NCBI GenBank assembly: GCA_003427395.1
Contig: BFEA01000012.1
Location: forward strand, 3,768,753 to 3,828,473
Direction of reading: 5' to 3'
Length of the DNA: 59,721 nt
Source: Chara braunii
Taxonomy: Eukaryota; Plantae; Charophyceae
In this document: one piece after another, positions 134 through 51,127 of the stretch
How the letters are laid out: every line of letters starts with the position of its first letter
Position numbering within the stretch: the first letter of the stretch is position 1
Program-made: the position numbers and the translations under genes
The notes under the pieces: model-generated
Seen by the model: only the letters and a program-made list of their open reading frames with translations
Databases searched by the model: none
Told to the model about the DNA's origin: nothing

Positions 134-349
134 ATTCGGACTACCCCGATGATTTCACTATCATGCATTGGCATTGAGGGGTAAATACATAGGAAAGGAT
201 AAGTAAACAAATACGTCTGAAGTCACCTGTAGACGTACTCGCAGGGAACAAGTAAGAAAAACTTTAAGTTGCGCTTTATAGGGCAAATTGAAATTTGATC
301 CTGAAATCACACTTAAAAAAAAATCTGACTATGGGTTTTAGTCTAAAGA

Positions 350-1133
350 TTGAAAGAGTTCTCCCTGTATATCTTAATGAGAAACTCTATGTATTTTAAA
401 ACCATATCAACAAATTTCAAGAGGAGAAAATCACAGTAGCATGATCTTTTCATCAGACCAAATCAATTATATTAAACATTGTGGTGTGATTTCACAATAA
501 TGATTGGTGAGATGATTGACTGAAAGGATCACTTCTTATACATATGTATTTCTTTATTAAGGACTCGTGTGAGTTCGCCTTGATAAATTATATTTATGGT
601 TATGTGGGTATTGTATATGTGGGGCTAAAGTTGAGTTGTAGGTTTCGTGCTTGGTTGAGACCGCCCTAGTCGATCGGCGTACGCTTCATCCTTGAGAGAT
701 CAGCGCCCTAAGTGACGAACGACGTTCGGGTTCAATAGGCGTTTTAATCGCTTATACCTATACTATAGCGAGCAAGCAAACGCCTTCGACTGACTCACCT
801 CTGCAGTTGCACGTAAAAGTTTTCGCACGTGGGTTAGTAACTCGGTGGGGATACGCCCCTAAGGGTGGTGACAACCCCTTAGGGAAAAAAAACTTATGCC
901 GCACGGGAACCTATCCTGTCGTAGGGGACCGTGGGATGTACAGTTGATGCACCCAGTTAGAGAGACGAAGGAACGATGCGACTGTGGTCGCTGCCGCCTC
1001 TGCGGCCCACAATATTATTTATGCGTCGTCCCTTAGTTGTCTCTAATCTTGTTTCGTTTTAACTCCTGCGTGACATGGTCGAGAGGGTTCCCGCTCCTTT
1101 GCGATAAAAAGACGGGAGTCGATGCGCTCGACA
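350..1133 (+). repeat. Copy 1 of a diverged terminal-repeat (LTR-like) family containing a structured-RNA core (663-950)
   Basis: Colinear similarity to 12050-13060 and to the reverse complement of 27155-28030: CCTAGTCGA, AAACGCC..CACCTCT, GCACGTGG.TTAGTA.CTCG, GATACG, AAGGG..TGACAAC, CCTATC.TGTC.TAGGG, TCCTGCGTGAC, GCGCTCGACA. Confidence 0.8.
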
Positions 1134-1890
1134 ACGTGCATGGGAAATGGGGCATCGTCCTACTATCCTCCCCCACTCCGCCCTCAACCCTCTTCACTTT
1201 CTACTCTTGAATCATCCATGCTAACTAACGAAGATATAGTTAGAATTACAGAAACCCTGGGCAAGTGCTACATTGACGGGATTCTACTCAAGCATTTAGC
1301 ACCTAATCAGATAGAAACCGTAACTGATTATGTTCGAGTTCTTCGTAACCTTGAGTTATATAAAGTCAAAGTCTAGTGGCTAAAGCAACATGTGGTAATT
1401 ATTTTTTTTGAAAATGAGTCAATGCCGCTCCCCATCGGCCCATCGAGGTTAAGAAGACGTTGGTACACATATGCGAAGATGGGTGGAAAATGCTCAACGT
1501 TCCTCCTAAGAGAGGGCTGTTTCAGTACGAGGAAAAAAACCTTGATACTTATGCCGCCTCATCGCCAGATATCGCCTGCTAGTAGATAATGACGCATTCC
1601 AAAGAACAGTTTGAGATTGAATTAGACAAGTACAAATATACGTTTTTGTTACTTTGCATTTTTTATTATTGATGTCTGAAAAACAACTTACTGATGAATG
1701 ACGCGACACTATGCGTTTTTCATATTTATGAATTCGGTGCCTATAGATCCCGGGCACGACGATGCCCCTATTAGAAATGCCATGAAGGATGCCTTTCGGG
1801 ACATCTTGAAGTCTCACCTACTTTTTATGTCAGAGGTTCAGATGGTTCAGAGCAGAAGAGGAATAAGGTGGTGGTTCAGGTGATACAGGA
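1122..1890 (+). pseudogene. LINE ORF1-like remnant (stops and frameshifts)
   Basis: Protein-like text continues across frames (WLKQHVVIIFFENE / IEVKKTLVHICEDGW / KRGLFQYEEKNLDTYAASSPDIA) and lies upstream of the APE domain. Confidence 0.45.
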
Positions 1891-3699
1891 AGAGGGTTCA
1901 GTCTCAGTTGGAGACATAGAGATTGATAAATCAGCTAATCCACCCCCCTCCTCCCTCTCAACCTTCCCCTCTAAAGGACAGAGAAAAGGTAAAAGGCTTA
2001 AATGACGAGGTGGTGGTATTATAAAAAAAAAAAAAAAAAGGTAAAAATTAGAAAGGTCTTTCTCACGAGGAGCTGGAAATTATATCAGAAGATGAAAATA
2101 TCAAAGTCGGTACAAAAACAATTATGATAAGGAGTGAAGAACACTCGAGCCAGGCGATGAAGTAGTAGCTGCCAAGTTGAAAATATAAATTTTATGGTGC
2201 TTACATAAAACATGAGGAAGAAGACAAAATTATGCACGAGTCACAGCACGCCGATTTCCTAAAAGAGGAGGAAGAAAAAGTTAGTGATATGTTGGACCAC
2301 CATAGTGAAGAAGATGGAAAAAAAAAACAATACCTTGTGAAAAGATAACGATGTACCTAAAGATAGCGAGTGTGATGCTTGCAGAGAGATTTTTTCACCA
2401 TTGGCTCACAAGCGGAAGCATACCCCCCAAAGAGAAGCACACACCCCATTCTCAGAATATGACTTAGAGTCAAACTCTGAGAGTGATAAATTGACGTGCT
2501 TCGACCATTTAAACTTTTTTTTTTAAGGTCTCAGAAAAGGGAGTCTTACTTTTTGATAATTTTATATTTTTTTCATTTACCTTCTCTTTCCCAAAGTGCA
2601 GACGGAATCCCCCTCCCCCCACAGACTGATATTATTCCGAATGGGTTCCCTTGAACTTAAAAGTGTCGGATGATCTGGTATTGCGGGTTGAAAAAAATGA
2701 CTCTATTGATTTTGAAGAGGGTTCTAGGATGTGTTGTGTCGTATACAAGACGACTGGGAAAGAACCCAGCCAGAGGAGCTAAATATTAACCTCGTGGGGC
2801 CACAACTTTCAAGAAACAACACTCGAGAGTTTGGATTTTCAGCCATACCCAATGAGAAACAAATACACTTTCTGGCTACAAAAGAGAAGATGAAAGATCA
2901 TCAGAGTTTGGCCCGTCGAGAAGAGGAATAAATCCATTCCGAGTCCCCTGTTGATCCTTCCCTGACAAAAAACTCGTAAAGGAAGAGATCACAAGTGATA
3001 AACTCAATTCATTGAGCGCTTAGCCTATTGTTAGAAGCCTGAATGAAAACCTTGTCGAGACCAAGAAATCAACAGTGCAAACCTCTAATCTACTGACTTT
3101 ATTCATTCCGGCAAGACGTAATGATCCTAACAAAACGTTTAACGAATGATAAGTTGGGGTTGCCCTCTTTTCGGATTCAGAGACAACCTTGAGAGGCCAA
3201 AGTCCATGAGTTGACGAATAAGTTGTCTTTGAACCACATGGGCAACGGTGACATCGATCTTGAAGTTGAAATCACATCGTTATTTGTCTTGTTACCTTCA
3301 GGAGATACTACACTTCGACACACTGTTATTTTCTTTGTGGGCTTTCAATCGATAATTGAATCCTTTAAGAGGTAAAGTAACCTAAGGGTGCAAGAAAACC
3401 CATTGGAGGACTTTTTTTCCTATAAAAGTGAGGCAGTATGTGGGATTACGTTAGCCTCAGACCTTACGAGAAAAAAATTATAGCCGATTCAATCAAATAT
3501 GTTAATCTGCATGATAGGATGACATCTTCATTGTTGGTGCAAAAACTGTATGACCTAAGAGCAAACATATAGGTCGTCCTCCCTTTGTTAAAGTCAAAGT
3601 GAGTTTAATCCAACCCGAGAACAATAAGGACCTGCCTAATGGTCTTACCTAATCAAGTATGGATTGTTCCATAAAATATCAGATGATTTGGTGAGACAA

Positions 3700-4345
3700 C
3701 CAATAGAAAAAAAACAAAGGCTAAGGGTATGACTACATTTGAATGCTTTGCACGTACTAAGTCACCTTGAGACTAAACTAAATTCTGACAAAGCTTCAAA
3801 ATATGCTAATTGGTGGGAGGGGTCACAATTTTGGACCCCAACAAATTGCATGTGGGGAGGAACAACAATGTTGATTAATAGAGAGTTTGACTGTCAGATC
3901 TTCAACACCTTCTCAGCCCATGGTGGAAGATGGGTTTGGGCGAAACAATGTATTGGCTCGAAGAGTTTGACACTTATGTCTGTTTACACCCTAGTCGGTT
4001 ATAATGCAAGAATAAAGTTTTTATTACTTTTTACCAACTTACTTGTCATCTCCAAGATGCAAAGAATTTGATCTTAATAGCCGATTGGAATGCAACCCTC
4101 AATCTCATACTAAACACGTTGACTTCTTCCTTCATCAAGGAAGATACTCAGATGTTAACTATATTGTAGACTCACAATGATCCTTGATTGATGTTTGTCG
4201 AACAATGAACCTTGACAACCACGGATTCGTGAGTCTTGTCGAGGAAAATACTAGATTTCGTGGCAAGAGGCAGTCCATCGAACCGTTGTATTTTGCCAGA
4301 CTTCACTTACTCCTCTCTCTAACCACTACCCACTAGTAATGAATA
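3700..4345 (+). pseudogene. LINE ORF2 APE-type endonuclease domain, decayed
   Basis: Motifs in order: LETKL (QETK), GGTTML, GRW, LMSVY, ILIADWN (GDFN), LIDVCR..N (DxWR), LDF (RLD), SNHYPL (SDH). Confidence 0.85.
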
Positions 4346-4974
4346 TTATATTATAAGAAGTTATAAAAAAACATACTCACCTTTCATTGAATATAAACAA
4401 TTTAAAAGACAAAGGACTTCTAAAATGGTAGAGGATCAAATCATAGTTTGATAACAGGGAAGAAGAATGGTCTGAAGTAAACCTCAATATTGTGAAAACC
4501 AATTTGATTGTTTTATCCTGAATAAAGGCAACAAACCAAAAATGGAAAGAATACAAATTGTTGAAGGAAATAGAGGAAGGAGAAGCTAATATGGGAAGGG
4601 ACCCGCTCTCATACTATTTTTGGTTGAGAAGAACAACATCCCTAGCCGGATAACCACACCTGTATATCTGACCGATTCATCGAGCCTCCAATTTATCTGG
4701 AATTCCGGATAAACCGAAAATTATCATAAAAAATATTTATTTGTTTATTTATTTTACGTGTGGTTTATTTGCGCTGGGTATGGGGTACCCGAGATAAAAC
4801 AAATAGTGGTGTTTTCGCCCGTATACCGCCTTACTCCTCCTTTTCCTCCTCGTCTGCCTCCTCCTAATCCTCTTCTTTTTCCTCTTCCTCCTCTTCCTCC
4901 TCCTCCTCCTCCTCTTCCCCCTCTTCCTCTTCCTCCTCGTCCTCCTCATCATAGTTCCAGTCCTCCTCGACAAT

Positions 4975-4975
4975 T

Positions 4976-5027
<52 letters not shown>

Positions 5028-5185
5028 TGTCAATTAATCAATCGTTCTAATCGAATCGATTGATTCGATTGGATCTTGATTTTCATTTAATGAAGATCCA
5101 ATCTGACCAATTGATTCGATTGATTGATTGATGAATGGATGGATGGATGAATCAATCAATTGATTGATTGATTGATTGATTGATT
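4975..5185. repeat. (AATC)n - core hairpin - (GATT)n palindromic microsatellite module, copy 1
   Basis: Core GATTGGATCTT..AAGATCCAATC flanked by complementary tetranucleotide arms. Confidence 0.85.
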
Positions 5186-6369
5186 AAAAAAGAACAAAAA
5201 TAAAAATAAAAATAAAAACGCAGGGGGTGGGTCGATGTCCACGTCGACAGTGTCGTTGTCGCCCCCCTCCTCCTCCACCTCTTTCTCCTCATCCCCCTCC
5301 TCCTACTTGTCGTTGTCCCCATCCTCCTCCTCCTCTTCTTCCTCCTCCTCTCCCTCCTCCTCCTCCTCCTCCTTCACATTGTTCTCTCGCTTTTGGTGCG
5401 AAAATTCTTACAAGGGTATCCACCCTGGTTTGTGCAAGTGATAGAAAATAAGTTTGAACTTGAAAACTGAAGGCACCGCGTGAGTCGCGGTTGTATTCTC
5501 CTTCACTCTCATTGAATGTGAGACAAGAAGTAGAGTGTGTGTGAGTGCGTAGTTTTAAAAGTACATGTGATCTTTCTTCTTTGATATTGACTATAAAGAT
5601 GACATAGTTGTCGACAAAAGCTTGTTTTTAATCAAACTAGGATTAAGTGATATGTTTTCTTTGACTCAGTATGTGTAACGGCGGCGCGTGCACGCGTGTG
5701 GAGGCAGCATCGCTATGGTCGACATCAAACCTAACCACCGGTGTCACGAAGATTTATAAAGGTGACTGTTTAAAACTTTGTTTAAGCCATGTAGCACACG
5801 ACACAGTAAGGCATTCTGATTACCCGTATGGCGGTACGACTTTGGCATGGTGGGCGGTTTGTGCGATGGTTATGAGCGAAGCTCGGTCTCCGTGTGACTT
5901 ATGTCGGCGCTCGGCGACCGTGGATTGGGTTGGTAGGTCAAGGTGTGACCTTGGGGCTTTTTGGTAGGCCCCTCACTGTGCCGTATCCATGTATATGGAG
6001 GTTTGCAGGGCTGATCCTAGACTTGGGCCTAACTGCTTTAGCACCATGGGTTACGGTGCCTGACTTCCATGCTGTAGTTATGGGGATCGAAGACTGCGGA
6101 TGGTGATGCAAGAGTTTTGGAACATTATCAAGGAAACAATGGGTTGATGGTCCGACGGGGCTATCCCCCTCAATTTTGCATTTTGCACTGATCGTAAGAG
6201 CAACTGGTGGGACAATAGGGGTGACGACGGTTCTTCCCCCTCGGTACATATTTCGATGTTTCTCTGTCCCTACTCTTTTTAATTTTCGTTTCCCTTATAT
6301 TTGTTGTTTTATTCTATTCTTCATAAAGTCCGCTTCCTTTTGGGATATGGGTCAGTATCCGTGCCCAGA

Positions 6370-6468
6370 CCAGCATCGAGACCCAAGGGCCTAACTTAGT
6401 TGGTAGACCCACGAACTGTTGAAATACGGACCCGAGCCCAAGTGTAGATGCCATTAGGTGAATATAAT
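6370..6468 (+). other. tRNA-like / SINE-head remnant a
   Basis: A-box-like TAACTTAGTTGGTAG. Paralogous to 6728-6830. Confidence 0.45.
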
Positions 6469-6604
6469 CAAATAACTTTGAATTGCCTGCGGCAGACAGA
6501 TCAATATTGAGATCTCAAGGCCGTCACGACACTCACAGACGTTGAGAGCGCACTTGTTTCACTTGGTCCGTTACGATGCCTGCGTGTTCGGGATGTTGGC
6601 GAAC

Positions 6605-6725
6605 TTTCCCTATCATGCTTATCGTGATACGTGGACCGGGGAGTTAACTTATGTGTTGGCTCGTGGGTATTTAGCCCACGAGATGGAAGAAAGGTAATCG
6701 CTTGTGCACCTCCCAGGCTCCCACC
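6605..6725 (+). pseudogene. Possible degenerate 5'-truncated U2 snRNA remnant
   Basis: TATCATGCTTATCGTGATACGTGGACC resembles plant U2 TATCAGTTTAATATCTGATAYGTGGGCC. TTAACT-TATGTGTTG resembles the Sm-site region. Weak match from memory. Confidence 0.3.
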
Positions 6726-6727
6726 AA

Positions 6728-6830
6728 CCAGGCGTTGAGGCCAAGTGACTGAGCTCAGTTGGTACAACCCCAAATTGTTGAAATACAGACCCAAGTTCAA
6801 GTCCAGATACGATGAGATGATCATAATATA
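6728..6830 (+). other. tRNA-like / SINE-head remnant b with A and B boxes
   Basis: AGCTCAGTTGGTA (A box) and AGTTCAAGTCC (B box) at tRNA-like spacing. Confidence 0.55.
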
Positions 6831-6893
6831 ATAAATTATGAATAATGTGGGGCCAACCAACTCATATATCTCAAAGCCGCTGCTTGCAACTTA

Positions 6894-6960
6894 GTCCTTC
6901 AGGAAATCTGTTAAAATTGGAATGGCACAGAGAAGATTAGCACGGCCCACTGCGAGGGAG
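6894..6960 (+). pseudogene. U6: U6 snRNA 5' fragment (~nt 1-65)
   Basis: GTCCTTCAGGAAATCTGTTAAAATTGGAATGGCACAGAGAAGATTAGCACGGCCCACTGCG matches plant U6, including the invariant ACAGAGAAGATTAGC. Confidence 0.92.
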
Positions 6961-6962
6961 GC

Positions 6963-7216
6963 GCCTGAGCAGGGCGAGGCCAAAGAAAACTCTGGTGGGT
7001 AGTACGGTGTAGAAGTATCATGCAAATCGAACGTAGGACTTGCGTATAGGGGCAAAAGGCCAAGCAGGCTGTCTAGTAGCAGGTCTCCTTGAAGTTTGAA
7101 AGCAGGCCGTCTAGTAGCACGTCTCCTTGAAGTTCGAATGCAGACCGCTTAGTAACACGTCTCCTTGAAGTTCAAAGTTTCCCGTAGAATAGCGGAGCTG
7201 TTGAGCAGTTTTACCG
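6963..7216 (+). pseudogene. 26S (LSU) rRNA fragment fused to U6, with an internal ~38-bp triplication
   Basis: GCCTGAGC..AAACTCTGGTGG..TGCAAATCG..GTATAGGGGC.AAAG..TCTAGTAGC..GAAGTT..TTTCCC..ATAGC.GAGC..AGTTTTA follows the LSU consensus. The GTCTAGTAGC..CTCCTTGAAGTT segment occurs three times. Confidence 0.9.
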
Positions 7217-7799
7217 CACCGTTATGCAATCGTGCGCTACGACGGATGGCGTCGGCAAGGGAACAAGGGAGAAAGTGATGAAGGCGAAAACGAGGAAAAA
7301 GGTCATAGGTAGGAGGACGAAGAGGAGTAAGCGAAGAAGAAGCACCGGAGGAAGAAAAGGTCGAAAGGGAATGAACCGAATTTAGGCGTGGGTACGCGCA
7401 AGGTATATTCAGGAAAGGAAGAAGCGGGGATGGTAGAAAAACGAGCATGGCACAACTGTTTTTGCTTAGCTCACTCGGTTCTCAATCATATCGAGTAAGA
7501 CAAGACGCTAAGCGAGGGTTTTTCACCCTGGCGAGCTTAGTGGTTGTTTTAGTTTTTGCGTTGGAGTAGCAACGAGAGAGTTAGTAAGAGAATTGGGTGC
7601 GCATAGGTCAAGTGAAGGGAGGAGATGAAAAAATTAGAGAACGGAGATCCCATCCTCGATGAAATCAGGTGAGGTAAGAATATAAACTTAGGTTTTGGGA
7701 GGTGGAGAATACCTTGGTGAAGATATATTGGAAGGGGGAGCAACAAAATATACGGTACGGTGTACAGAAACTACGCGAAGGAGAGAATACAAAGAAGGG

Positions 7800-8095
7800 A
7801 AGTGTATATTTCCTTGTTCTAGTGGAAGATTTATTCCGATTTTGCTCATCCTACCGATGAACGTAGCCCCTCTCTAGCTCTTTGCACGCATGATTGGAAA
7901 TTCAGTGTATATTTTCATGTCTGACCAGAAAACTCATTCTAATTTTTCACATCCTATCGATGGAAGTAGGCTCTCACTTTGCCGTTGTGCGCATGACTGA
8001 AGCACTGTGTATATTTCTGTGTTCTAGCGAAAGATTCATTGCGATTTTGCTCATTCTGCCGAAGGAGGATCTCCCTCTTTTTCTCGCGCGTGTGA
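7800..8095. repeat. Degenerate tandem repeat, ~103 bp x 3
   Basis: GTGTATATTT starts at 7802, 7905 and 8007 with colinear downstream similarity. Confidence 0.8.
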
Positions 8096-8234
8096 GTGCT
8101 CACCTCGACGGTTGCATCTGGCAACTCCTTAGTCCATACTCACAGCGGGATAATTTTTTTTCAATGTATTTGACTGTCGTGGTGTATCTTCCTATGTTCT
8201 TGCGGAAGTTTTCTTCTCACTTTGCACATTTGTA

Positions 8235-8295
8235 GGCTGCTAAGTTGATGCATTTATGAAACTGTCAAATTGAAGACTTTAGTTCAAATCCTGTG
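8235..8295 (+). other. tRNA-like remnant c, just upstream of the 18S fragment
   Basis: GCTAAGTTGATGCA..AACTGTCAAAT..GAC..AGTTCAAATCC aligns with copies a and b. B box intact. Confidence 0.45.
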
Positions 8296-8316
8296 GCGAT
8301 TGCTAGTTACACACGC

Positions 8317-8570
8317 CACCTAGTCGATCCTGCCAGCGACCATATACTTGCCTCAAATACTAAGCCATGCATGCCTAAGTATGAACACTTTGGACTATGA
8401 ACTGCGAATGGCGTATTAGATCATCTTCTTTTCTTTTTCTTTTTTATCTTACTTTTAATTTTATTGTCAAGTGGTTTCTTTACCACTTGGATACTATGGT
8501 TATCTTAGAGCTAGTACATGAAGTGTATCCCGACTTCTGGAAAGAATGTAATTATCAGAAAGGGTCGATC
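8317..8570 (+). pseudogene. 18S (SSU) rRNA 5'-end fragment
   Basis: ACCTAGTCGATCCTGCCAG..CATATACTTG.CTCAAA.A.TAAGCCATGCATG..TAAGTATGAAC..ACTGCGAATGGC..TAGAGCTA.TAC..CCCGACTTCTGGAA matches the 18S 5' end. A T-rich insert is present at ~8425-8470. Confidence 0.92.
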
Positions 8571-9835
8571 CAAACCCACCTTGAGTTATCCGTATCTGAT
8601 TGCGGTTATGACCAAGTCCGGTGAAAGTGGGGCATCGACGAAGGAATAGAAAGGAAGCTTGTTTCCGGTCGTTTCAAATGTATTGCGACATTGAGAGTTG
8701 GAGCATGTTGAGCTTCCGTGCGTGGTTCATTGAGTTGCAACTTTTATTTTCGCTACTGCTGAACTGAAGTTTGCAAGAGTACTGTTTATCTTGTTGAGTT
8801 GTTGGCACAACTGCCATTCAAGGGCCCACCGTTTTGTTGCTGAATGAACCTCAGTGATTCAGGTGCAACTGTTGTTTTTAGTGGTTGGTGAGCTGCTTGA
8901 GTTTGCGCAAGGGATTTGGATCTATCAACCTTCAGTGTGAGTTTTGTGTTGAACTCTCTTGCGCACATTATTGTGTGAGGAGTGTGGTGATCTCGCGATT
9001 CAAAGGGTGAGTTCGTGAGTGCTTTAGCAAGTGATCGAGAGAGTGAAGGCGGCGAGTTGTGTATGACTGTGCTCTGTCACTAGGTATTGTTGTGCACTGC
9101 TGCTGAACAGTGCTGCAGTGTCTCGAGGTTGCGCACGACTGTTGTGGGTGCTGTGTTTTGCTGAAAATTGTTGCGTTTAGCCTGCATCTTGAATAGAGCA
9201 CAACGGGGATGTGCACTTTTCGAACGCAAACTTTTCAGGCTGAGTAGTGGGGGCGCTAGTTAGAAAGTGAGATGTTGTGACTTGAAGGAATAACCAGGCT
9301 TTGAAGGGGAGTTACCACCGTGACTTAGAGGTCAGTCAGGGTGCAAGGTATCAAGGCCCTCTCACGTGAGTTTGAGCGCACCTCTCTTGTATCTGAGAGA
9401 CTGAATGATTCATCTTCTGTTTTGCAAACTCTCAGTTTAGTCTATTTCATTAAGAGAGGAAGGTGGCAAGCACAATTGGAAACCCGTAATCCGTACCAAG
9501 GCCTCTGTGGGAGGTTCACCCCACTGATTGCGGGAACTCTGTCGGAATTTAGGTGAGGTTCTGGAGGCAGATAACTGTCAGATATAACTTTCTTTGCCTA
9601 TGTGAACCCACTATACCTCTACCATTACATCTCTCTAGTTTGTTTGAGAGGTATGTGCGTGTTCCTCTATGATTTTGTTTCCTTTTCATAACTTTAATCG
9701 GATTAACTAAAAGGAGTGCATGCGTGAATTTCAGTTTCATTTTTCTCTGACTGGAATGAGACTAAGGGATAAACTAGCGGAAGGTGAGAGGAAGGTGGTA
9801 TTGCATGCGTTTGACTGAGTCGATCAAAGGTTGGG

Positions 9836-10600
9836 CATTGTTTCTAAGCTGAATGACACAGTGTTATGTTTTTTGTCTGTTTTCTGAAGGACCAGACATT
9901 GTTTCGAAGATGAATAGCCTCGTTGCTATGTTTATTTCTGTGGATTTGCCTGTCTAACTTTTGAGGTTAAACATTGTTTCTAAGATGAATGGTTTGGCCT
10001 ACCTGTTTCTTTTGGAGTTTCTGACTGAAGTTTGACATTCATGATTGTTTTCAAACTGAATGGTTTAACTTCAAGCTTTGTGTCACTTGGGATAGACTGG
10101 ATATTGTTTCTAAGCTGAATGCTTCAGTCTCTTGTTTTATTTTGAGGGAAACTTTCGTTTGGTGAAAGACTAAGCATTGTTTTTATGTTGAATCGTTTAG
10201 CCTGAAACCATACACTAAGCACAAATAAGTACAATTGAAAATACTTTATTTATATTTGCAGGTGAACAAACAGCTTGACATTGTTTCCGAGGAGAATGGT
10301 TCAACTTCATCCTATTACTAAGAAGAGAGATAAAGTCTAAAGTATATTAATTGGAAATAAACTGGTCAAGCTAATCATTGATCTAGTAAGTTGAATGACT
10401 TAGTTCCCTGCCCATATTTTGAAAATAAGTCGTAGAGTTATTAACTTTTAGATATTAAAATATTTCAGGGTGACTAGACAATGATTCTAAGCTGAACGAT
10501 ATAGTCACATGCCCAAAGACGAAATAAGTAATTGTGCAACTTGTTCGTATATAATCTCAGACGTGTTAGGCGTTGTTTCTAAGTTGAACGATCTAGCGTC
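9836..10600. repeat. Ten copies of a ~25-30 bp motif (CATTGTTTCTAAGNTGAATGR) with variable spacers
   Basis: Starts at 9836, 9897, 9972, 10043, 10102, 10175, 10279, 10376, 10479 and 10571. Confidence 0.8.
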
Positions 10601-10859
10601 ATGCCATATGTAAGATGGGTAAAAGAGATAATTATCTGGAGGATCAATGAACTATTTTATGTAGAAACAACTTGAAATTTTTTGTGAGAGTCCTTACCCA
10701 TTGTGGTATGGACTTGCATGTGGTTGAGTGTAAACTCTACTTAGTCAAAGTTTCAACTTTGGTAGGTAGTTGCTTTAGATGCTCGTCATGTGCTGAAGCT
10801 GTAGGAGTTAGTTCAATTTCTGCATTTTATGAGTTAAGTTTAATTCTCATACTTGATTT

Positions 10860-11480
10860 TGTATAAATTTTGGAAAGACACTTTCGCTAAGGGAAGTGAT
10901 GCCTAAATTTTTGCAAACCCAATTTTTTGTGTTCACAAATTCAACTTTTTGTTTGAGTTTTATATTTGGCTTGGTAGAAATCTGGAAAGTGTGTTTTTCT
11001 AGGGGAAATGCTGCCCAATTATTTTACTTAATCAGTGAGTTCGACAAAATTCGGCTTTGTAAAGTCCTAATTATTTTTAGATTTTATATTTAATTTTGTA
11101 TAAATTTTGGAATGACACTTTCTCTAGGGAAAGTGTTGCTAACACTTTTAAAAATATAAAGAGTTATTTAAATTTTATCTTGGCAAAATTTGAGTTTTAT
11201 CTTGAGGTCATATCCGACTCAGTATAAATTTGAGAAACCTACTTTTCTAATGAAGATGCTGCCCAAATGTTTACTGAATCGGAGAGTTTGACAAAATTTA
11301 ACTCGTAAAGTTAAAGATCGTTTTCAAATTTCATATTCAGTCAAATATAAATTATAGAAAGACACTTTCTCTAAATGGAGTGTTGCAAAAAATTTCTTGG
11401 TTTCGAGCATTAGATTATATTTTGATAAGAAAAGTTTTGGCAATTCACCCTGTGTAAGGGAGATGCTGTTAAAATGTTTT
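10860..11480. repeat. Degenerate ~120-bp tandem repeat with alternating (dimeric) units
   Basis: TATAAATTTTGGAA.GACACTTTC.CTA.GG.AAGTG.TGC-like units at ~10862, 10976, 11099, 11224, 11347 and 11432. Confidence 0.7.
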
Positions 11481-12049
11481 CTATTTTCTTAGCACTCACT
11501 TGAAGGTGAATTTAGGTTTAGTCTTGGAAAACATTTGGGTGAGATGTGATATGGGGGTTTATTCTTCATGCACTTATAGCTTAGTTTTGGGAATTGGCCT
11601 ATGTTGTGTTACAAGTTCTTTTTCGACCATTTCGATTCAAGATTTGACTAGTTTCAGCCCGATTCTACGAGGATCATCTTCTACTGTCTTCTTAAAACAG
11701 ATTAGTTGTAAATCTTTCGGTTTTCGCCTCAACTCTAACTCATTATCGCTACTCAAGCTAAAGGCCTTAGCCCCTATGGGTTGAATTCTTCTCATTATAT
11801 TTTTACGCGGACTTTATCAATTGGCCATTTAAAAAGGACAAAGTATTTTATTTTGGAAGGTTGGATAAAGGTTGGAGCTTGTGTGGATAAAGCAAGCGGA
11901 ATGAATGCAGAGAGTGGTTAAAGTTGACCTCGTGTGATGCGTTATTTGCCAATGTGAAATCTGTAATATGATTGCATGTATGTTTGTGGTTCGAACTCTG
12001 GATTTAACTTGTCTGCGATCATGTGTATATTTTGAAGGAAGTCACACTA

Positions 12050-13060
12050 TAATTGTGAGAGTAATCGTTCTGTATCTTATAACCCTTTTATATTTGTATT
12101 TTGTGTATTCGTGCGGTTCATTATGAGTATGAGAAAAAATCAAGCAGATCTGTATTGAGAGAAAAGGAAAATTCTCTTTTACCTTCTTCTTCTTAGCGAT
12201 TTTTTAGTTTGACATTAAGGTCTGTGGCGGCTATCAAAGTCAAACCCCTTGACCTGTTTTCAGAACCTGGATAATGGAGCCTTATGCACAGAGTCGGATT
12301 TGTTTAGTCCCCACAAAGGGTCAATGCCCACCTACCACTCTCCTATGCAGGGTGCAGAAGATGGCAGGATGCTCTGTCCACTTATGCGTTCGCTAGTGAA
12401 TTGACCCCTTAAACACATGAGCGTCGAATGCAATCCCATGACTTAATGTGGGTCGCATGTTTATGAGCACTATATATAACTTTGTTGTCACGATTGGTCA
12501 CGTATTCACGCAGGATTGATCACTTATGATAGATGTTTATTTGGCGACGACTATTTATGTATAGTTTCATACGTGCAACCTTTGCGCATAATTATGAAAA
12601 CAATTATGGGGCGAATACAAAAAGGGACTAGGCGTGACTTATGTGAGAAACTTGGTTTTATTTTTGTGTGGCGTAATGTGTGGTTAGATAGACTCGTCCT
12701 AGTCGATCGATGCTGAACCCCGCTTGGGACATCATCGCCCAGAGCGTCGGTTCGCGTACGGGTCCGTTAAAGGTGTTTGACCGCGCGTACCCCCTATGCT
12801 ACAACGTATGAGAAACGCCCTCGATTGGGCCACCTCTACGATTGCAACTGAGAAACTTTTGCACGTGGTTTAGTAGCTCGACGGAGATACGTCTGTCCAA
12901 GGGTGATGACAACCATTGGGCAGAGATACGTTGTGTCTCACGTGACCCCTATCATGTCATAGGGGTTCGTGAGAGGTGCGGTTGGAGCACTGGAGCGGCA
13001 AAAGCTCCACTGCAATAAAAAATCCTGTAAAATCCTGCGTGACCGATGCGCTCGACACCG
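12050..13060 (+). repeat. Terminal-repeat family copy 2 (structured core 12696-12990)
   Basis: Homologous to 350-1133 and to 27155-28030 (minus). Ends GCGCTCGACACCG. Confidence 0.8.
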
Positions 13061-13094
13061 CTGCTGCTCCTCCTCCTCCTCCTCTTCCTACTTT

Positions 13095-13282
13095 GCAGAC
13101 TTTGGCTTCCATGACAACCGTCTAGCTGTCTGTATCAATCAACACCCTTTGTGGTGTTTGGGTCAGCGAGCAGTTAGGCAGCGTAGCTCCACTTTCGGTT
13201 CATCCCACATCGCTAGTTCTGCTTACCTTAAATGACCCACGTGAACCTTTCATTGATCCTCAAGGTTCGCTTAAGCAACCCC
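13095..13282 (-). pseudogene. 26S rRNA fragment (antisense on +)
   Basis: CTTCCATGAC.ACCGTC..GCTGTC..AACACCCTTTGTGG..GGTTCATCCCACATCGCTAGTTCTGCTTACC is the reverse complement of conserved LSU sequence. Confidence 0.9.
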
Positions 13283-13309
13283 TTTCCTTAATTGTTTTTT
13301 TTCTTCTTA

Positions 13310-14772
13310 ATTCAATCAAACAATCAATTAATCAATCAACCAATCAATTATTCAATCAATCATTTCAATCGAATCGATTGAGGATCTTGATAATAATTCA
13401 ATCAAGATCCAATCAAATCAATCGATTCGATCAGAATGATTGACTGATTGATTGATTGTTTGATTGATTCAATCAAGCTATCATGAGGGAAACTTAAGAG
13501 GGAACCAACTACTAAACGGTTCAATAAGTATTTCGCCCATATACCATTTAACTCGTCATCATCCTCGTCCTCCTCTTCCTCCTTGTCTGCCTCCTCCTCC
13601 TCCGCCTCCTCTTCCTCTTCTTCTTCGTCCTCATCTTCCTCATCTTCCTCCTCCTCTTCCTCCTCCTCGTCCTCGTCGTGTACTTCTTCTTCCTGCTCGC
13701 CTTCCTCATCATCGTTCCCCTCCTCCCCAACAATCAACCAATCAACCAATCAACCAAGCAACCAATCAACCAATCAACCAATAAACCAATCAATCAATCA
13801 ATCAATCAATCATCCCAATCGAATCGATTCGATTGATTCCATTGGATCTTTATTGTCATTCAATCAAGATCCAATTTAATCAATCGATTTGATTGATTGA
13901 TTGATTGATGGATGGATTGATTGATTGATCGATTGGTTAAAAAAATAAAAATGAAAATAAAAAAATTACAATGGGGAGGGTCAACGTCCGCGACGACAAC
14001 GTTGTTGTCATCCCCCACGTCCTCCTTCTCCTCCTCGTACTCCTTGTCATGGTCCTCCTCCCCTTATTCATAGTCCTCCTATTCCTCCTCATCTTCCTCC
14101 GCCTTCTCCTCCTCCTCCTCCTTCTCTCCTTTCTCTTCCTCCTCCACGTTGTTCTCCCACTCCTCCTCCTTTTCCTCCTCCTCCTCCACATTGTTCTCCC
14201 ACTCCTCCTCCTCCTCCTCCCCCTCCTTTCCACCAGAAAGCTCCTCCCCCTACTCATCCTCCCTCTCTTCGTCAGAAAGTTCCTCCTTTTTCTCGTTTCC
14301 TCCGCCTCCTCCTCCTCCTCCTCCTCCACGCCTCCTCCTCCTCCCCCTCTCTACCAGAAAGTTCCTCCTCCTCCTTGTCATCCTCCCTCTCCTCCTCCTC
14401 CTTGTCATCCTCCCTCTCCTCCTACTCGTCGCCGTCTTCCTCCTCTTCCTCCTAGTCCTCCTATTCCTCCTCATCTTCATACCCCTTCTCCTCCTCCTGT
14501 TCTTCCTCCTCTCCCTCCTCTTCCTCCTCTTCCTCCTCTTCCTCCTCTTCCTCCTCTTCCTCCTCTTCCTCCTCTTCCTCCTCTTCCTCCTTCATGTTCT
14601 CCCCCTCCTCCTCCTCCTCCTCCTCCTCCTTCCCCTCTCCGCCAGAAAGGTCCTCGACAACCAACCAACCAACCAACCAACGATCAATCAATCCAATTGA
14701 ATCTTGATTTTTATTCAATCAATATCCAATCTAATCAATCGATTCGATTGATTGATTGATTGATTGATTGAT
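13310..14772. repeat. Three more (AATC)n-core-(GATT)n hairpin modules (13310-13470, 13730-13935, 14660-14772) interleaved with (CCT/CTT)n tracts
   Basis: Cores GGATCTTGAT..ATCAAGATCC, ATTGGATCTT..AAGATCCAAT and a degenerate third copy. Confidence 0.85.
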
Positions 14773-15114
14773 TTAGAAAAAAAAAAAAAAACGCAAGGGG
14801 CGAGTCGACGTCCTCGTCGACAGAGTCGATGTCGTCCCCCTCCTCCTCCTCTTTCTCCTCCTTCTCTTCCTCCTCTATCTCCTCCCTCTCCTCCTACTCA
14901 TCGTCCTCCTCCTCCCCCTCCTCTTCCTCCTATTCCTCCTCGTCTTCCTCCGTTTCCTCCTCCTCCTCCTCTTCCTCCTCTTTCTCATATTCCTCCTCGT
15001 CTTCCTCCACCTCCTCCTCTCCCTCCTCCACTTTGTTCTCTTGCTCCTCCTCCTTCTCCACGTCCTCGTCTCCTACTCCTCTTCCTCTTCCTCTTCCTCC
15101 TCCTTTTCCTGCTT

Positions 15115-15421
15115 TTCAGATTTCGGCGTCCATGACCATTGTGCTGCTGTCTGCATCAATCACCACCCTTTGTGGTATCTAGGTTAGTGCGCAGTTTGGG
15201 AGCGTAGGCTCAACTTTTGGTTCATCCCACATCGCTAGTTCTGCTTACCAGAAACGACTCACTTGGAGCTTTCATTGATCCTCAAAGTTCGCTTGAGCAA
15301 CCCCGAAATCTTACATATTTGAAGTTTGGGAACAGGTCGAGGGTGCTTCACCTCGGAGGCCGCTAATTAATCGCTTTACCCGATAAAACTTTTAAACAGC
15401 TCCAACTACTATCATGGAAAC
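15115..15421 (-). pseudogene. 26S rRNA fragment (antisense on +), longer paralogue of 13095-13282
   Basis: CCATGACCA..ACCCTTTGTGG..AGGTTAG..GGTTCATCCC..CTGCTTACCA..CACTTGGAGCT..TATTT.AAGTTTG.GAA.AGGTCGAGG..CGCTTTACCCGATAAAACT. Confidence 0.92.
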
Positions 15422-22399: not shown

Positions 22400-23910
22400 A
22401 GACCATGCATTCAATATAGCGCCAATGGCTGCAAAATGAACATATAGTGTCAGAATGTGGAAGGTGCCTGCAATCAGGAACGGAGGGACAATCCTTTACA
22501 TACATAGATGCAGAAACCATGTCATTATAGTGATTGTGATAGAGACGATGGTGGCTACAACTGAGTGTGACAGTGCCTGTAGTTGTGCAAAGAAAAATGT
22601 CGCAGAGTGTCGATACATTGTTCTAGTGCAGCACAAGGTCAAAGGAATGATGTTCGATTTTATTTATTTATTTATTTTTTTTAACAAAACTTGCGGGAAC
22701 TGTCAGGTGTGGTGATAAGAGCACCCAAACCTAGTAGTCTTCGCTGGTAACTCCATTCTATTGGTGGTGAGATGCACCTTCTGCAAATCAGGTCCAGCGT
22801 TCCTGATACATAAGTTTAGATTGACCAATAACCAAGTTTGCAGATTGTTACCGGCCTCTTCAGTCCTCACCGGATCCCCAGATATGCCATGCAACCAGAC
22901 TATTATAAGCCTTGTTGTCTTTAGCGTGAACTTGAAACCAAATGGTACTAAATCTAACATAAAAGTTGATAAAACTGAATCTTATCAACAAAGGAAAGTT
23001 TTTTTTTTTTTGGATGATAGTCTTGTACTTATCAATGTTTTGACTGCACTCTGTACAATGTGGTGGGGTATTCTTGTAGCTTGTAATCCCTGACCCTGAC
23101 CGCAGTGAGAACGAAGTCCCGATAAACCCTATCCCTTAACCCCTCTCCCTCTTGCCTAAACCCTTTCCCCACTCTTATTTTCTGCTCTTCGCATGAGACA
23201 CACCTCCATTCCCCTTTTCTAGGTGGTTCCATACCCCGAAGGTCGTCCTATCCGTCCTTTCATATGTTCCTCCGTACCAAGTTACTACCAACCCATCTCT
23301 ACCAAACAATTTGACGGGGGGGGAAGGGGTCAGGGAATGATCTTCAACATAAAATAGATTGCATACAATTTGGTGTGGCAAGAAGACAACATCATTATGT
23401 AAGAAATCAGTAACATCGGTCATGACATGGACCATGATGCCATTGTTCCACAACTCTCAATGGTCAGAGGTACGTACAATGATCATGGGGCGACAGGTTT
23501 GTGCACAATGCAAGCAGAGATGTGTGACGAAGGATTAAACCACTTACATCCTCGAGCATTGGGTAGCTCAAGTTGGCGGTCCCTCATTAGTACTTGTGGG
23601 AAATCGATGGTAAAGCCTCTTTCCCTAATATAATTACAATCCTCTGGCTGTAGGCGCGGGAGATCGACATCTCCCCGAAGGGCGATTGGAAGCAAGTCTG
23701 ATGTTGTATAAAACATGCAGTGAATGTGAAGACATATATTAGTTGCAGTCAGACTGCAGAGATTGGTGAGGATCTCAAGCTCGTGTGTCAGATGCTGGCC
23801 AACAATTTGCAGACCACCCAGTTGGTGTTGCAATCCCAAAATGTCTTGGGTTGCTTTCTGGTTAGTCATTTTGCAGATCACCCATGCGGTTTGGGCGTGG
23901 CGGGGCACAA
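22400..23910 (-). pseudogene. Highly decayed ORF remnants, possibly a Ulp1-like protease and PHD-finger pieces
   Basis: DLPRLQP..IDF..CKWFNPS..LYVPL..SWS resembles the C48 motif order. PPRKGEWRCVSC and ICSFCSHWRYIEC resemble PHD halves, but they occur in the wrong order for a single finger. Confidence 0.3.
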
Positions 23911-24439
23911 ATTTTGTGGCTCATCCAAACGATGTTGGTCGACCATTAATAAATCCCCCATGTATTTTTCGCCTTGTCGGGTTAATTGCAATTCGGGTTG
24001 ATCATGTTTTAATCCCTCAATGTTTGGGGCCGCATCCTAAGTATGGACTGTCCTTGGAATCAGGAGTGTACTCTGGGCAGGGACCACATCCAGTTGTACA
24101 AGTGAGTCATGAATTTCTAATGTTGAAAGGCATAAAAAATGGTGATGTGGTTGCCTGCAAGCAATTGAACTGTCTATAGGAGGCATAAGAGCGGATATTG
24201 TAGTTTAGAACAAAGGTATAGCAACAACCTGTGGAACAGGCACAAAAAGAATTGGGCCAAACAAAAAAACAAGCTGCTGATCCTCGGATAAGTGACAACG
24301 TCGAACATGTCGTCGATGATATATATATAAAAAAAAAACAGTGGTATTGCAAATAGACGATGAACATGTCCCTGACAACCAAGGTGGAAAAATGGAAACA
24401 ATGGAAACCGGAGAGTCTGTTCTCAAGCAGTAGAATCCG

Positions 24440-25285
24440 CCATGAACTTAGCCTCCAATATAAGAAGAGGAGGAACTGAAGATCGAAGGAGCGCAAACCT
24501 TCTTCTTTGTGACTATGGCCCCGGGTCATACAACCACTCGTACACACACACCTTCCTTACCCTGGTACTGGTGATCCCGGCCGCCACATACCAACCTCAC
24601 CCGACAGTAATGGTCACCCCGCCAACTCATCTTCTACACCCACTTGCCTAGATCCCTTAGTCTGTCACAGCCACCCGGCGCACAACCTTGCAAAACTACA
24701 ATCGGCTCATGAAGACTTTTCGACTCGTCGTAAATACGCATCATCTAGCCACGACTTCCCGGAAGCTGGCAGATGCTCGCAGTTCGTCGCGGCTACCTGA
24801 CGCATAACCTTGCAAAATTACAGTCAGCTTGTCAGGACTTTTCGACTCGCCGTACATACACATCATCTAGCCACGACTTCCCGGAAGGGTACTAAAACAA
24901 GGTAGAAGTTGTGAGCACACAGGTAGATCTAAGAACCAAAATCGGCTATCCACCATGAACTTAGCTTCCAATATAAGAAGAGGGGGAACCGAAGATCGAA
25001 TAAACCTTTTGCTCTTTGACGATGGCCCCGGGCCATACAAGCTGATACAGCCACTCGGACACACACCTTCCTTACCCTCGTACTGGCGATCCCGGCTGCC
25101 ACATACCAACCTCACCCCATAACAAGCGTCACACCGCCAACTTAACTTCTACACCGACTTGCCCAGATCCCGCAGTTCGTCGCAGCCACCCAGGGCACAG
25201 CCTTGCAAAACTACAGTCAACTCGTTAGGACTTTTCGACTCGCCGTACATACACATTATCGAGCCACTACTTCTTGAAAGTTGGA
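24440..25285. repeat. Direct tandem duplication (~510-bp period) with an internal ~120-bp sub-duplication
   Basis: CCATGAACTTAGC.TCCAATATAAGAAGAGG at 24440 and ~24953. CTTTTCGACTCG occurs three times. Confidence 0.85.
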
Positions 25286-27141
25286 AGATGGGTTAAGCGA
25301 GAGTTGTACGGATGCGCGTGTGGATTTATAGTTGCGAAGAGGAGGATAGAAGATGGGAAGGAGCGGGGTGGAGGTAGGAGAGGGGGGAAGAGAGAATTCG
25401 GGTAAATCGCCTAGGGAAAACCCTATCGATCCCTGCGGGTTCCTTGCAGCCAATTAGATTACAACATGAGGGGAGTATCCTCCTTACATGAAGTCGTCTG
25501 ATGGTTTGAATACCCTGAGGGGGGGGATCGGTAGGGAGTTGCTAAAGGTAGGAAGAAGGAAAGCGTGAAGAGTAGTGCGGAGCAGCACCGAGATTCAGTG
25601 GGGGAGAAGTGTGTAGGGAGCGGGGATGGAAAACAGTTACAGATGGAGGAAAGAAGGGGTGAAGAAGAAAAAGGCGAAAATGGGATGGGGATGGTGGGAA
25701 GCGAGGGAAATTTGCATACATGGTGCTGGCAAAGAAACAAAAGACACCAAAAACAGTTACGTTCCGCCCATCCTAGTGTTTTTCTTTTTTTTGGGGTGCT
25801 CACAGGACCCAACCCATTCCTACCTCAACGTTCTTTTTCCTTAATCTAACCCCTGCTTCTCCATCTACTGGGGGAACTGTTGACCCTTACCTCGTGTATA
25901 CCGGACATCGTTGCAGGCACCGACGCTAGGCCAGGACGACCCCTCCCAACCCTAGTTGAAGCACTATCGGGCGAGCCTAGTCATACGGGGCACTTCAGTC
26001 ACCAAGCATGATCGTTAAAACTAATTCAAGATTGAGAAATTCAAAAATGATATCCACGAATGAGATTGGGCGAGGGAAAAATCCTATATTTATTCAGATG
26101 CTGCTGAAAATTTACAGAGTCTTCAAGGACGAATTTAGGAACATTCATTTGCAAGAAAGAACATATCTGCGTGAAACGCGGCCACAAATTCTGGAATTCC
26201 CAACTGCCGATCCAAATTCCTAGCGTGCTTACTAAGGCGCATGTAAGTCCTACGTAACTTCGTGGATCATCGGAAAGAAATTGCGAAAAAGTCCTCAAAA
26301 GAAAAACGACAAGTTTTACAAAGTTTGAGGGCCTCATTAGCCGTAGAGCCCATACATACCACCAACTTAAACAGAAGGGAGATTGAACAAGCGCGGGTAA
26401 CAAAACTCTAGGCTTCGAAAGTTCGCTCAAGTACAAAAGTTGGTACGTCACATCTTGACGGATATAGAGGACATAACTCATGTCGATGGCTATATCACAA
26501 AGTTCCCCCAATTATTGGGGAAACGGGATGTCTCTCTGTTTGTAGTGGTAGAATGGGACCCCAAGTTCCCCTTACCCATCAACAACGAATAGAGATACTC
26601 CCATGAGGGCAAGGAGTTTTCGGTCCCCGTTAGCCACTCTCAAGCTATGTGGTGCTATGCTTGCAAGTTGCAAACATAGAGGTCACTTGTGCACCCCAAT
26701 GACTCATGTCCAAACAATAAAAAAACAAAGATGGAAGGAATGGTCATTCCTCACCCGATTAATGAGAAAGTTGGTTCCTGGAGGAGAAAAAGTTGGAAAT
26801 GGCTCTTCACAATACATGAAGACGGTCGGCCTGGGAAATGGATTTGGCAGGGGACAGGCCAGTTGTTAGCCTTTCCATTCGGGTCCAAGATTCGGATCAG
26901 TAATGGCCAAAAACATAAAGGAAAACAAGGGACCACGCCGGAATACGCAGAGTGTAGAGACAAACCCAAGCATGACACAACCACCGTGGGCACATAACGC
27001 GCCATTGAGGGGAGGTCCGGGTCGTGAGGAAAAAGCGGAGGAAGACAAAACAACACGATGCTCTCCTCTATCCCGACGGATGCTAACGCTGCCTGGACTC
27101 TCCAAAAGATGCATCCCTCCCTTTGCCCGCAAGGACAATAA

Positions 27142-27152
27142 GCTGGATGCCA
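27142..27152 (-). promoter_or_regulatory. Putative primer-binding site TGGCATCCAGC
   Basis: Begins with TGG 2 nt after the shared repeat end CACCG. Partial match to the iMet PBS TGGTATCAGAGC. Confidence 0.35.
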
Positions 27153-27154
27153 AT

Positions 27155-28420
27155 CGGTGTTGAGCGCACGGTCCTTGCTGGGGGGACCTTCGCGGCTGCG
27201 TCACGCAGGATTTGCAAATTCACGAGTCGCTTCACGTAAAGGGAAGTGGCGGAACCGCACCGGTCGAGTGCGCCAGCTATACCTCCATCGAGTCCCTACG
27301 ACAAGATAGGGTCTCACGAGGTACATCTTACCTCTACCCGCAGGAGTTGTCACCATCCCTTGGGTGGGCGTATCCCCACCGAGCTACTGAGCCACTTGCA
27401 GAAGCATTTTCGTGCAATCGCAGAGGTGGCTCAACCGAGGGTGTTTCTCGTGCTCTGTAGCATAGGGGGTCCGTGCGGTCCACGCTTATCTCGGACCATG
27501 TACACGAGCCATCGCGAGGGGTGTTGGTCTCCCACACGCGTTTCGACGTTGGTCGACTAGGACATCCCAACTTAACCACGCGACACACAACGAAAAACTA
27601 GAAAAACTAACTCAAACAACCATGTAAGCCCCTTTTTTAAAGGTTTTTACCCATTACTCGAAAGAAGTTAAACTGTATGAGCGAGGCTCGCGCAAAGTTG
27701 CATAAAACGAATGCGTGCTCAAAGGGGCCCATAACGCTCAGTCATGTGTACTCACTTGATCGACTATCATGGCGACGGTTCATGCGTTACCCACAACCGC
27801 GCAACCTCTTATGGGTTTCAGGGTTGTGCACGACACTCAAATGTCGAAAGCGAAATATCATGAAGGGACCCTCCTTCACAATATTGAACAACAAAGGATA
27901 AGTCGTTCAGCCATTGCGCACCCCTGTCTTCTAGGCAGTGGATGGCAATAGGCAAGGGGCGTAGGTCCGGCTCGTGGGGGAAACTCTTTTGTGCGCGACC
28001 AAAACCTGGGATGTCCTGGTCAAGGACCTCTAATTCCAAGCTTGGACCAATGTCCGGCTAATAATCTAAAAGCAAACATGTTTAAGATGGGGTTCACTCG
28101 TTCCTCCCCTGTGGAAAGACAATAGTGGGGACACTAGGGGTTAGTTCCGGTCTTAGTGGGCAATTCACCTTACCCGAACCGAGTCTAAGTCTAGTCGAAG
28201 GTCGAGCGTTAAACCTTGCGCCTGACCACTCCTTCCTTTTCGCTAGATGCGTGCGGCAGGAGGAAGTGTAAATAAAAAGAAAAAGGGAGGTCTCAAAGAA
28301 AATCGGGGAGAGTCATTCTCACAGCCGCAGTTGAATCTTATCACTCACACGCCGCATTCAATCATCATAATCATCCTCAATTTAAGAACGAACCCTAGCT
28401 CCTATATAAACATGTTATTC
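27155..28420 (-). repeat. Terminal-repeat family copy 3 (structured core 27563-27265)
   Basis: The reverse complement reads GTCCTAGTCGA..CCCCTATGCTAC..GAGAAACACCCTCGGTTGAGCCACCTCTGCGATTGCA..GTGGCTCAGTAGCTCGGTGGGGATACGCCC..GGTGACAAC..CCCTATCTTGTCGTAGGG..AAATCCTGCGTGAC..GCGCTCAACACCG. The upper boundary is approximate. Confidence 0.8.
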
Positions 28421-45700: not shown

Positions 45701-46529
45701 CGACGGGACAGGGCATCGACTTCCAATTAACATCTCGACAAATTATGAATCGGATGCATCCGAACTAGGCTTCTTGACATGAAATTGAACTTTGAAAAAT
45801 CGCAGCACGGAACAGACGTGGAGAACGGAATTCTTTCTGCGTGCTCCCCTCTGCTTCTTCCTTCTTATTAGGTTCGAATGTATCCAAACCACAACCCAAG
45901 ACGAGCACGGGATGGTACTCTCGGTTGTTGTGCATAATTTTTTTGTGTCGAAGGGACGTTGTAAGGACCGGTGGGTCCCGAATAACATCCCGTCACTCGA
46001 GAGTCTGTATATAGCCAAATTGTGTACAACAGAGAAATCTGGAGTAAGGAGGCAAGAAAAAGAAGAGACAAAGGACTAGGCCACCGGAAGGAGTGATGCC
46101 CTGGGTTGAGAACCGCAGGTGGAAAAAACCGGCGACGACAAGGAAGTAAGCGTGAGGACATGGGCGCATACGAACATAGCATGAGGCCAAGAGGGCTACT
46201 GGAATTCAGCAAGACTAAGGCCGAGGGGCATTGACTTTGCAAACATGGCACGACAAGCGACAAGAGAATAGGGGAGCCGAGAGGTGGGCGGCCCCGGTCG
46301 CGGTGAGACGCTAGAAAATAAGGGCCCAACATGAGGGGCGCCTACGACAGTTAACGGGAGCCTCAGATTGGAGGTCCCACGGCCGGAGAAACCGGCGCAC
46401 ACAAGGCCCAAGAAAAAACACGGGAAAGGGGTCGTCGTAGGCCGGTAGACGCCCAAAGAACGTGGGACACCTTGAGGGAAGGCACTAGGGACCACGTGAG
46501 ATCAAGTAAAAATAACGATATTCGGGATA

Positions 46530-46700
46530 AAATATGTCAGGGGCCACAGGCAGGACAAAGTGTCGGGGACCACCGGCAAGATAAAGTGTTGGGGACCATC
46601 GGCGGGATAAAGTGTCGGGGACCAACGGCGGGACAAAGTGTCGGGGACCACCGGCGGGACGAAGCATCGGGGACCACCAACGGTACAAGTAGCGGGGACA
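46530..46700. repeat. 26-bp minisatellite x ~6
   Basis: AAAGTGTCGGGGACCACCGGCGGGAC-type units at 46557, 46583, 46609, 46635 and 46661. Confidence 0.9.
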
Positions 46701-51100: not shown

Positions 51101-51127
51101 TCCTTTCACCTACCTTGCTCATTTTTT

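Follow-up and report, generated by a model that had tools for sequence, protein, structure and literature searches.

Three diverged stretches in a 59,721-nt window of the Chara braunii genome (the window being the whole stretch of DNA analysed) form the hairpin-rich 3′-terminal ~450 nt of longer, ORF-less mobile insertions. They belong to a very abundant dispersed repeat of C. braunii, share a sharp 3′ end and have a stable sense-strand consensus fold, and one of them ends a 7.67-kb insertion that is flanked by a candidate 4-bp duplication (Table 1). We tentatively identify them as the promoter-proximal, R/U5-like end of giant (7–9 kb) LTR-type repeats, with a probability of about 40%; the transcription start and any RNA-level function are likewise putative.

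The three dispersed, diverged copies described in the original prediction are real, with an identity far above chance in blastn, nhmmer and cmsearch. Between copies, identity is 67–72% over 200–384 nt (blastn, E 1e-21 to 1e-50). Both nhmmer and a covariance model (cmsearch) returned exactly three matches in the window and nothing else, and a 22-base gapped core pattern matched the three copies only, with 0 matches expected. Homology between copies 2 and 3 sets in at a TATA-like, A-rich box (12619 and 27637) that precedes the invariant CCTAGTCGA by ~77 nt, and their blastn alignment covers 12619–12998 of copy 2. On the 3′ side of the core, all three copies carry AAyTCCTGCGTGAC, a variable inserted hairpin and then GmTGCGCTCrACAmCG, and they stop at a sharp common 3′ end, the motif GCGCTCGACA(C/A)CG, which a motif search places at 1136 (copy 1), 13060 (copy 2) and 27155 (copy 3). 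Beyond the unit limits, the flanks show no relatedness among copies at the DNA or protein level (including by tblastx), and no conserved reading frame was found across the three copies; a protein-coding reading was rejected on these grounds. The possibility that copies 1 and 2 are the LTR pair of one element was also rejected, as the two share only 67% identity and show no relationship in their upstream parts. Upstream of copies 2 and 3, the 3′ motif has an inverted partner, degenerate in copy 3, which in copy 2 completes a perfect 12-nt inverted repeat and forms the closing helix of the MFE fold; these partners fit either a long-range RNA helix or DNA-level inverted repeats.

Table 1 Coordinates of the repeat copies and of the insertion that ends in copy 2.
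Feature	Position	Strand	Basis
Copy 1, conserved core: 5′ hairpin domain and multi-branch domain with stems A–D	656–964	+	nhmmer E 2e-91; cmsearch 293 bits
Copy 1, 3′ terminal module: AACTCCTGCGTGAC, variable inserted hairpin, GATGCGCTCGACAACG	1061–1136	+	Sequence reading, motif search
Candidate 4-bp target-site duplication CGCT, left copy	5388–5391		Sequence
ORF-less 7.67-kb insertion, last ~450 nt = copy 2; candidate giant solo LTR	5392–13058 (/60)	+	Empty-site paralogue
Copy 2, upstream inverted partner TCACGCAGGATT	12505–12517	+	Partner of 3′ motif AATCCTGCGTGA at 13031–13042
Copy 2, full conserved unit: A-rich TATA-like box, core 12689–13001, 3′ motif 13031–13060	12619–13060	+	nhmmer E 4e-98
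Candidate target-site duplication CGCT, right copy	13059–13062		Sequence
Copy 3, full conserved unit: TATA-like box near 27637, core 27570–27256, 3′ motif 27212–27155	27155–27637	−	blastn; nhmmer E 2e-96; DNA depth profile
Copy 3, degenerate upstream inverted partner of 3′ motif, 2 mismatches	27780–27790	−	Motif search

The family is large. DNA contigs of one Chara run were aligned to 23000–28400, and depth summed over contigs reached 111,484 on the core of copy 3 (27344–27524), compared with ~12.5 for single-copy contigs. Depth was 13,400 on 27163–27343 and dropped to 22 below 27162. The 3′ boundary is crossed by a single-copy contig (26130–27289), and the single-copy depth just past the 3′ end supports a terminal position for copy 3 as well. 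Upstream of copy 3, a further 1.2 kb has a depth of 240–4,166, and alignments of other genomic copies extend to 27909. Hundreds of distinct contigs match only 27413–27479 and then continue as recognisable but diverged relatives; together with the contig depth, these many partial matches indicate a family size of the order of 10^3–10^4 members. A hyper-conserved centre of 66 nt and an abrupt 3′ limit characterise the family, and some members at least continue far in the 5′ direction. Oligo-dT RNA reads map to the core in both orientations (depths of 39.7 and 84.5, run X8); most are <90% identical and so derive from paralogues, and in this poly(A) RNA they show no preferred starts or ends. Another high-copy repeat, on which summed DNA depth peaks at 13,673, lies at 23362–24266; Pfam matches none of its ORFs, and it is clearly expressed, with strand bias, in poly(A) RNA (depth 243 versus 28, run X8).

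No copy turned up (nhmmer, cmsearch) in a further 138 kb of Chara DNA, two Gypsy fragments among it, so the three copies within 27 kb represent a local cluster. These loci had been chosen via relatives of the window's 469-aa ORF, which is 97% identical to C. braunii CBR_g8621 and whose relatives are all from Chara. Two gapped-pattern scans of JGI metagenome contigs gave 0 matches, and translations of spurious ORFs of the element gave no match in a word search and an exact look-up. The sole HMMER match (P0013) was rejected as a relative, being an unrelated tandem-repeat ORF on a metagenome contig, and an association with the neighbouring Sola-like giant transposon was rejected because its relatives (L001–L005) carry no copy. 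One soil metagenome run (of runs X5 and X6) holds 22% of the sampled 31-mers of 27100–27700, which points to near-identical Chara-type DNA in an environmental sample. A literature search for descriptions of Chara SINEs or transposable elements found nothing specific.

The position of copy 2 can be read from an empty site. A CTC/CAAT-rich unit occurs in three paralogous copies (4800–5391 plus 13061–13290, 13300–14100 and 14300–15304), the first of which is split by the 7.67-kb insertion, making an empty-site comparison possible. The parts of this unit left of 5391 and right of 13061 align continuously with the paralogous unit near 15040–15090, which lacks the 7.67 kb. The inserted block is 7,667 nt long, with a longest ORF of 119 aa and no Pfam matches. 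The CGCT/CGCT duplication fits the empty-site paralogue, although CG, the first two letters of the right-hand CGCT, also follows the end of copies 1 and 3, so that the exact end and the duplication are ambiguous by 2 nt. Paralogue and duplication together support the placement of copy 2 at the terminus of a mobile insertion. The block starts with TTTGGTG and ends with GACAC(CG), giving termini TT...AC (or ...CCG), with TG 2 nt inside the start and CA about 1–3 nt inside the end. Its first bases, GGTG-CGA, resemble the reverse complement of its last bases, GGTGTCGA, an imperfect and weak similarity over 8–9 nt. Left-end relatives of the block were found neither in the window nor in the other Chara loci examined.

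Several further features of the window were recorded. Inside the block, in the same orientation as copy 2, a U6 snRNA-like sequence (6894–6993, +) covers the full model at 39.4 bits (E 3e-7), just below the gathering score of 44, and is likely a retro-copied or captured U6. Downstream of copy 1, between it and the CTC-rich unit, the ORF at 3739–4071 (+), within 3739–4336, resembles an AP-endonuclease (Exo_endo_phos) by language-model features (0.95, 26/30 matches), with no match in Pfam and homologue searches; it is the only endonuclease-like ORF found and probably a decayed LINE fragment. Tandem satellites with 172-nt and 91–92-nt periods lie next to each other at 50434–53293, with 75–91% identity inside the arrays, and short tandem arrays lie at 46509–46714 and 7062–7177 (a 26-nt unit repeated at least six times and a 38-nt unit repeated three times).

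On the sense strand, the RNAalifold consensus comprises 11 helices totalling 87 pairs, with 90% of cells paired, laid out as a 5′ hairpin, two closing helices, a small hairpin, stem A, stems B and C, and the long stem D. As originally proposed, stem A forms 10 of 10 pairs in every copy, including a column that reads C-G, G-U and G-C (helix table); it includes eight G-U pairs and none of the A-C type. Every copy also carries the described stems B, C and D, with the loops GAUACG, GRUGACAA and CNUGUC invariant. The long arms of stem D differ between copies yet pair within each copy, and invariant letters are concentrated in loops and junctions. Consensus energy is −70.6 kcal/mol for the sense strand (z −4.4 against column shuffles) and −57.5 for the antisense strand (z −2.1). 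Folded singly, copies 1, 2 and 3 have z-scores of −0.5, −3.7 and −2.1 in sense and −0.1, −2.8 and −2.3 in antisense, copy 1 having the weakest fold, no better than shuffles; a longer stretch of copy 2 (12500–13056) reaches −5.0. No known family had been recognised in the element, and none emerged from Rfam. A gathering-threshold scan of the whole window returned only psbT-asRNA at 50070, and permissive per-copy E-value scans gave chance-level matches only, with no tRNA, SRP, RNase P/MRP, snRNA, ribozyme or R2_retro_el among them. The psbT antisense RNA match (50070–50107, +; 50.9 bits) lies in nuclear-looking T-rich sequence and may be a small plastid-derived fragment.

Retroviral and LTR-retrotransposon 5′ leader (R-U5) RNAs, among them the HIV-1 leader and the 5′ UTR structures of Ty1 and Ty3, are promoter-proximal and hairpin-rich and lie at the 3′ end of the LTR; they are better conserved than U3 and end at the integrase end. 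The Chara module, if read as part of an LTR, is similarly promoter-proximal, hairpin-rich and at the 3′ end of its unit. An LTR-type repeat is the most economical reading because it accounts jointly for the sharp common 3′ end, the conserved TATA-like box and the fact that the DNA upstream of copy 3 is itself repeated. Transcription would start from this A/T-rich box, ~80 nt upstream of CCTAGTCGA, and the next hairpin-rich ~400 nt would form the 5′ leader of the element RNA, with a 5′ hairpin, the multi-branch domain with stems A–D, and a terminal hairpin ending in GCGCTCGACA. The last bases would be the integrase end. Such a module may have been kept across families whose U3 parts diverged beyond recognition because the leader and the end would carry cis functions in strand transfer, packaging or dimerisation, and integration.

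Several results count against the LTR-type reading. Unlike R-U5 leaders, the Chara copies have no linked primer-binding site, second LTR or gag-pol, and the unit that hosts copy 2 is a 7.7-kb ORF-less block with a putative transcription start and function. No second copy of the block, gag-pol or tRNA-complementary site was found beside any copy in the window, and neither a polypurine tract linked to a copy nor a conserved polyadenylation signal was seen. The absence of a second block copy and of gag-pol in the window is compatible with solo LTRs. The termini of the block are not the TG...CA with a short inverted repeat that marks LTRs, RNA is found on both strands without a start or end, and covariation is at chance level in non-circular tests. 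The blurring of the duplication by CG, the weak fold of copy 1 and the lack of copies in the other 138 kb of Chara DNA weigh against the reading as well. The original placing of the sequence on a retroelement, near its terminus, is borne out for the terminus of a mobile insertion (copies 2 and 3) and not for the retroelement: none of the copies has a reverse transcriptase, gag, a primer-binding site or an LTR pair linked to it.

A sharp 3′ end common to all copies, homology reaching different distances upstream and a very high copy number would also suit a non-LTR retroposon, with the module as the terminal recognition region at its 3′ end, belonging to a stringent-type LINE (in its 3′ UTR) or to a non-autonomous, SINE-like partner; reverse transcriptase would bind the structured 3′ end and prime on the target, leaving variably 5′-truncated copies. 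Stringent LINEs and their SINEs (eel UnaL2 and UnaSINE1) have common 3′ tail stem-loops, and the R2 3′ UTR is structured. The Chara element resembles these in being structured and high-copy, with a sharp 3′ terminus and a variable 5′ extent; its terminal hairpin with a variable insert also agrees, and the endonuclease-like LINE fragment and the U6-like retro-copy point to past LINE activity in the region. It differs in having no upstream reverse transcriptase ORF and no repeat or A tail, and its multi-branched ~300–450 nt are far larger than known LINE or SINE tail hairpins. Upstream of the copies there is neither an ORF nor a Pfam match of the kind expected beside a LINE 3′ UTR, ORFs near the copies contain no Pfam domain, and the 7.67-kb block is ORF-less although copy 2 itself is well preserved. 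SINE hallmarks are absent too: no tRNA, 7SL or 5S head was found (no tRNA, SRP or 5S matches at E up to 10; 0 genes by ARAGORN), the copies have no common A-rich or simple-repeat tail, and internal TTTT runs in copies 1 and 2 speak against transcription by Pol III. A tRNA-derived head was rejected, the GGTTCG word being a helix strand and not a T-loop. We consider a non-LTR origin doubtful, though it is a serious rival.

An origin as the subterminal end of a non-autonomous DNA transposon is likewise doubtful, though a serious rival too. The palindromes would then be sites for a transposase or another protein at the DNA level, and the RNA fold would be incidental. Subterminal regions of such transposons and of MITEs share with the Chara element a conserved end, a heterogeneous interior, inverted partners and a short duplication. 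The upstream inverted partners in copies 2 and 3, the inverted similarity at the block ends, the short fixed-size duplication, the partly strand-symmetric hairpins (antisense z −2.8 and −2.3 for copies 2 and 3) and the equal numbers of G-U and A-C deviations reported below all agree with a DNA transposon. However, only one end of the Chara element is conserved, with no left-end relative of the block found in the window or the other loci examined, and the 11–12-nt inverted partners are internal and degenerate rather than terminal, and copy 1 has none. The consensus fold of the sense strand clearly surpasses that of the antisense strand, and stem A, with its G-U and without A-C pairs, also speaks against a purely DNA-level role. 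A canonical Helitron end (5′-TC, 3′-CTRR) was rejected, as none was seen on reading the ends.

The stems had been said to be conserved by compensatory mutations, and here the controls bear on whether any structure was selected at all. Against a fixed structure, the alignment has 15 double-change pairs compared with 7.5±2.0 in shuffles, a circular comparison since the structure was derived from the same three sequences. When column-shuffled alignments were refolded, they gave 12.4±2.8 double-change pairs, and 18 of 100 reached at least 15. In a leave-one-out design, with the structure taken from two copies and the third tested, pairing was kept at 29 of 82 informative positions (35%), the level of slid controls (33–37%). 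The antisense strand folds differently, into 81 pairs with as many ‘compensatory’ pairs, and only 18 pairs are common to the folds of both strands. Compensatory evolution is accordingly undemonstrated. So is RNA-level, strand-specific selection, for which the many G-U pairs had been cited: with strand-neutral helices, defined without wobble pairs, deviations to G-U and A-C number 72:71, and the G-U excess of the sense consensus fold (41 versus 10) is no evidence because the antisense fold has a mirror excess (33 versus 9) on different helices. The proposed GACA/UGUC kissing loop involves only invariant letters, on which covariation is uninformative. Dead copies gather neutral changes after insertion, so three copies have little power either way, and they cannot show the preservation of an RNA shape.

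These results would suit a core without any selected structure, which would simply be the slowest-evolving part of an old repeat, its promoter or its end, with stems of the kind expected from any three-sequence alignment of 300 nt at 55% G+C. Shuffled alignments that give nearly as many compensatory pairs, leave-one-out pairing at chance, the z-score of copy 1 and the 81-pair antisense alternative all favour such a reading. We nevertheless judge it rather improbable, given a sense alifold energy 4.4 s.d. below shuffles, the long arms of stem D and the placing of invariant letters in loops and junctions. The greater stability of the sense consensus relative to shuffles (z −4.4, compared with −2.1 for antisense) is the remaining support for the fold, and we regard an RNA structure as plausible rather than demonstrated. 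If the copies were small non-coding RNA genes in their own right, each driven by a promoter upstream, this would explain the conserved A/T-rich box at ~80 nt on the 5′ side and the compactness of units whose flanks are unrelated, but such a gene family is very improbable given thousands of copies, no Rfam family match, no terminator, no discrete RNA ends, reads on both strands and the inclusion of copy 2 in a 7.67-kb insertion.

Of the functions first suggested for the sequence, nothing points to a ribozyme or an IRES, and nothing shows a packaging signal. The sequence observation itself is real and its interpretation partly right on position; on mechanism it is unsupported. A more specific proposal, which we consider unlikely, is that the ~300-nt multi-branched RNA domain is previously undescribed, is conserved across diverged giant-LTR (or other) retroelement families of charophyte algae, with its invariant loops GAUACG, GRUGACAA and CNUGUC and a possible loop–loop contact, and serves as a dedicated platform for packaging, dimerisation or reverse transcription.

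If the fold is not real, the sequence is the ordinary conserved end of an abundant repeat, and it would mainly serve as a marker in the annotation of these elements and of where exactly they end on the 3′ side. A real fold would mean a large structured cis-RNA of which thousands of natural variants exist, and hence a ready-made covariation data set, in the closest algal relatives of land plants, and it would offer a handle on the transcription, packaging and integration of Chara's unusually giant, ORF-less terminal repeats.
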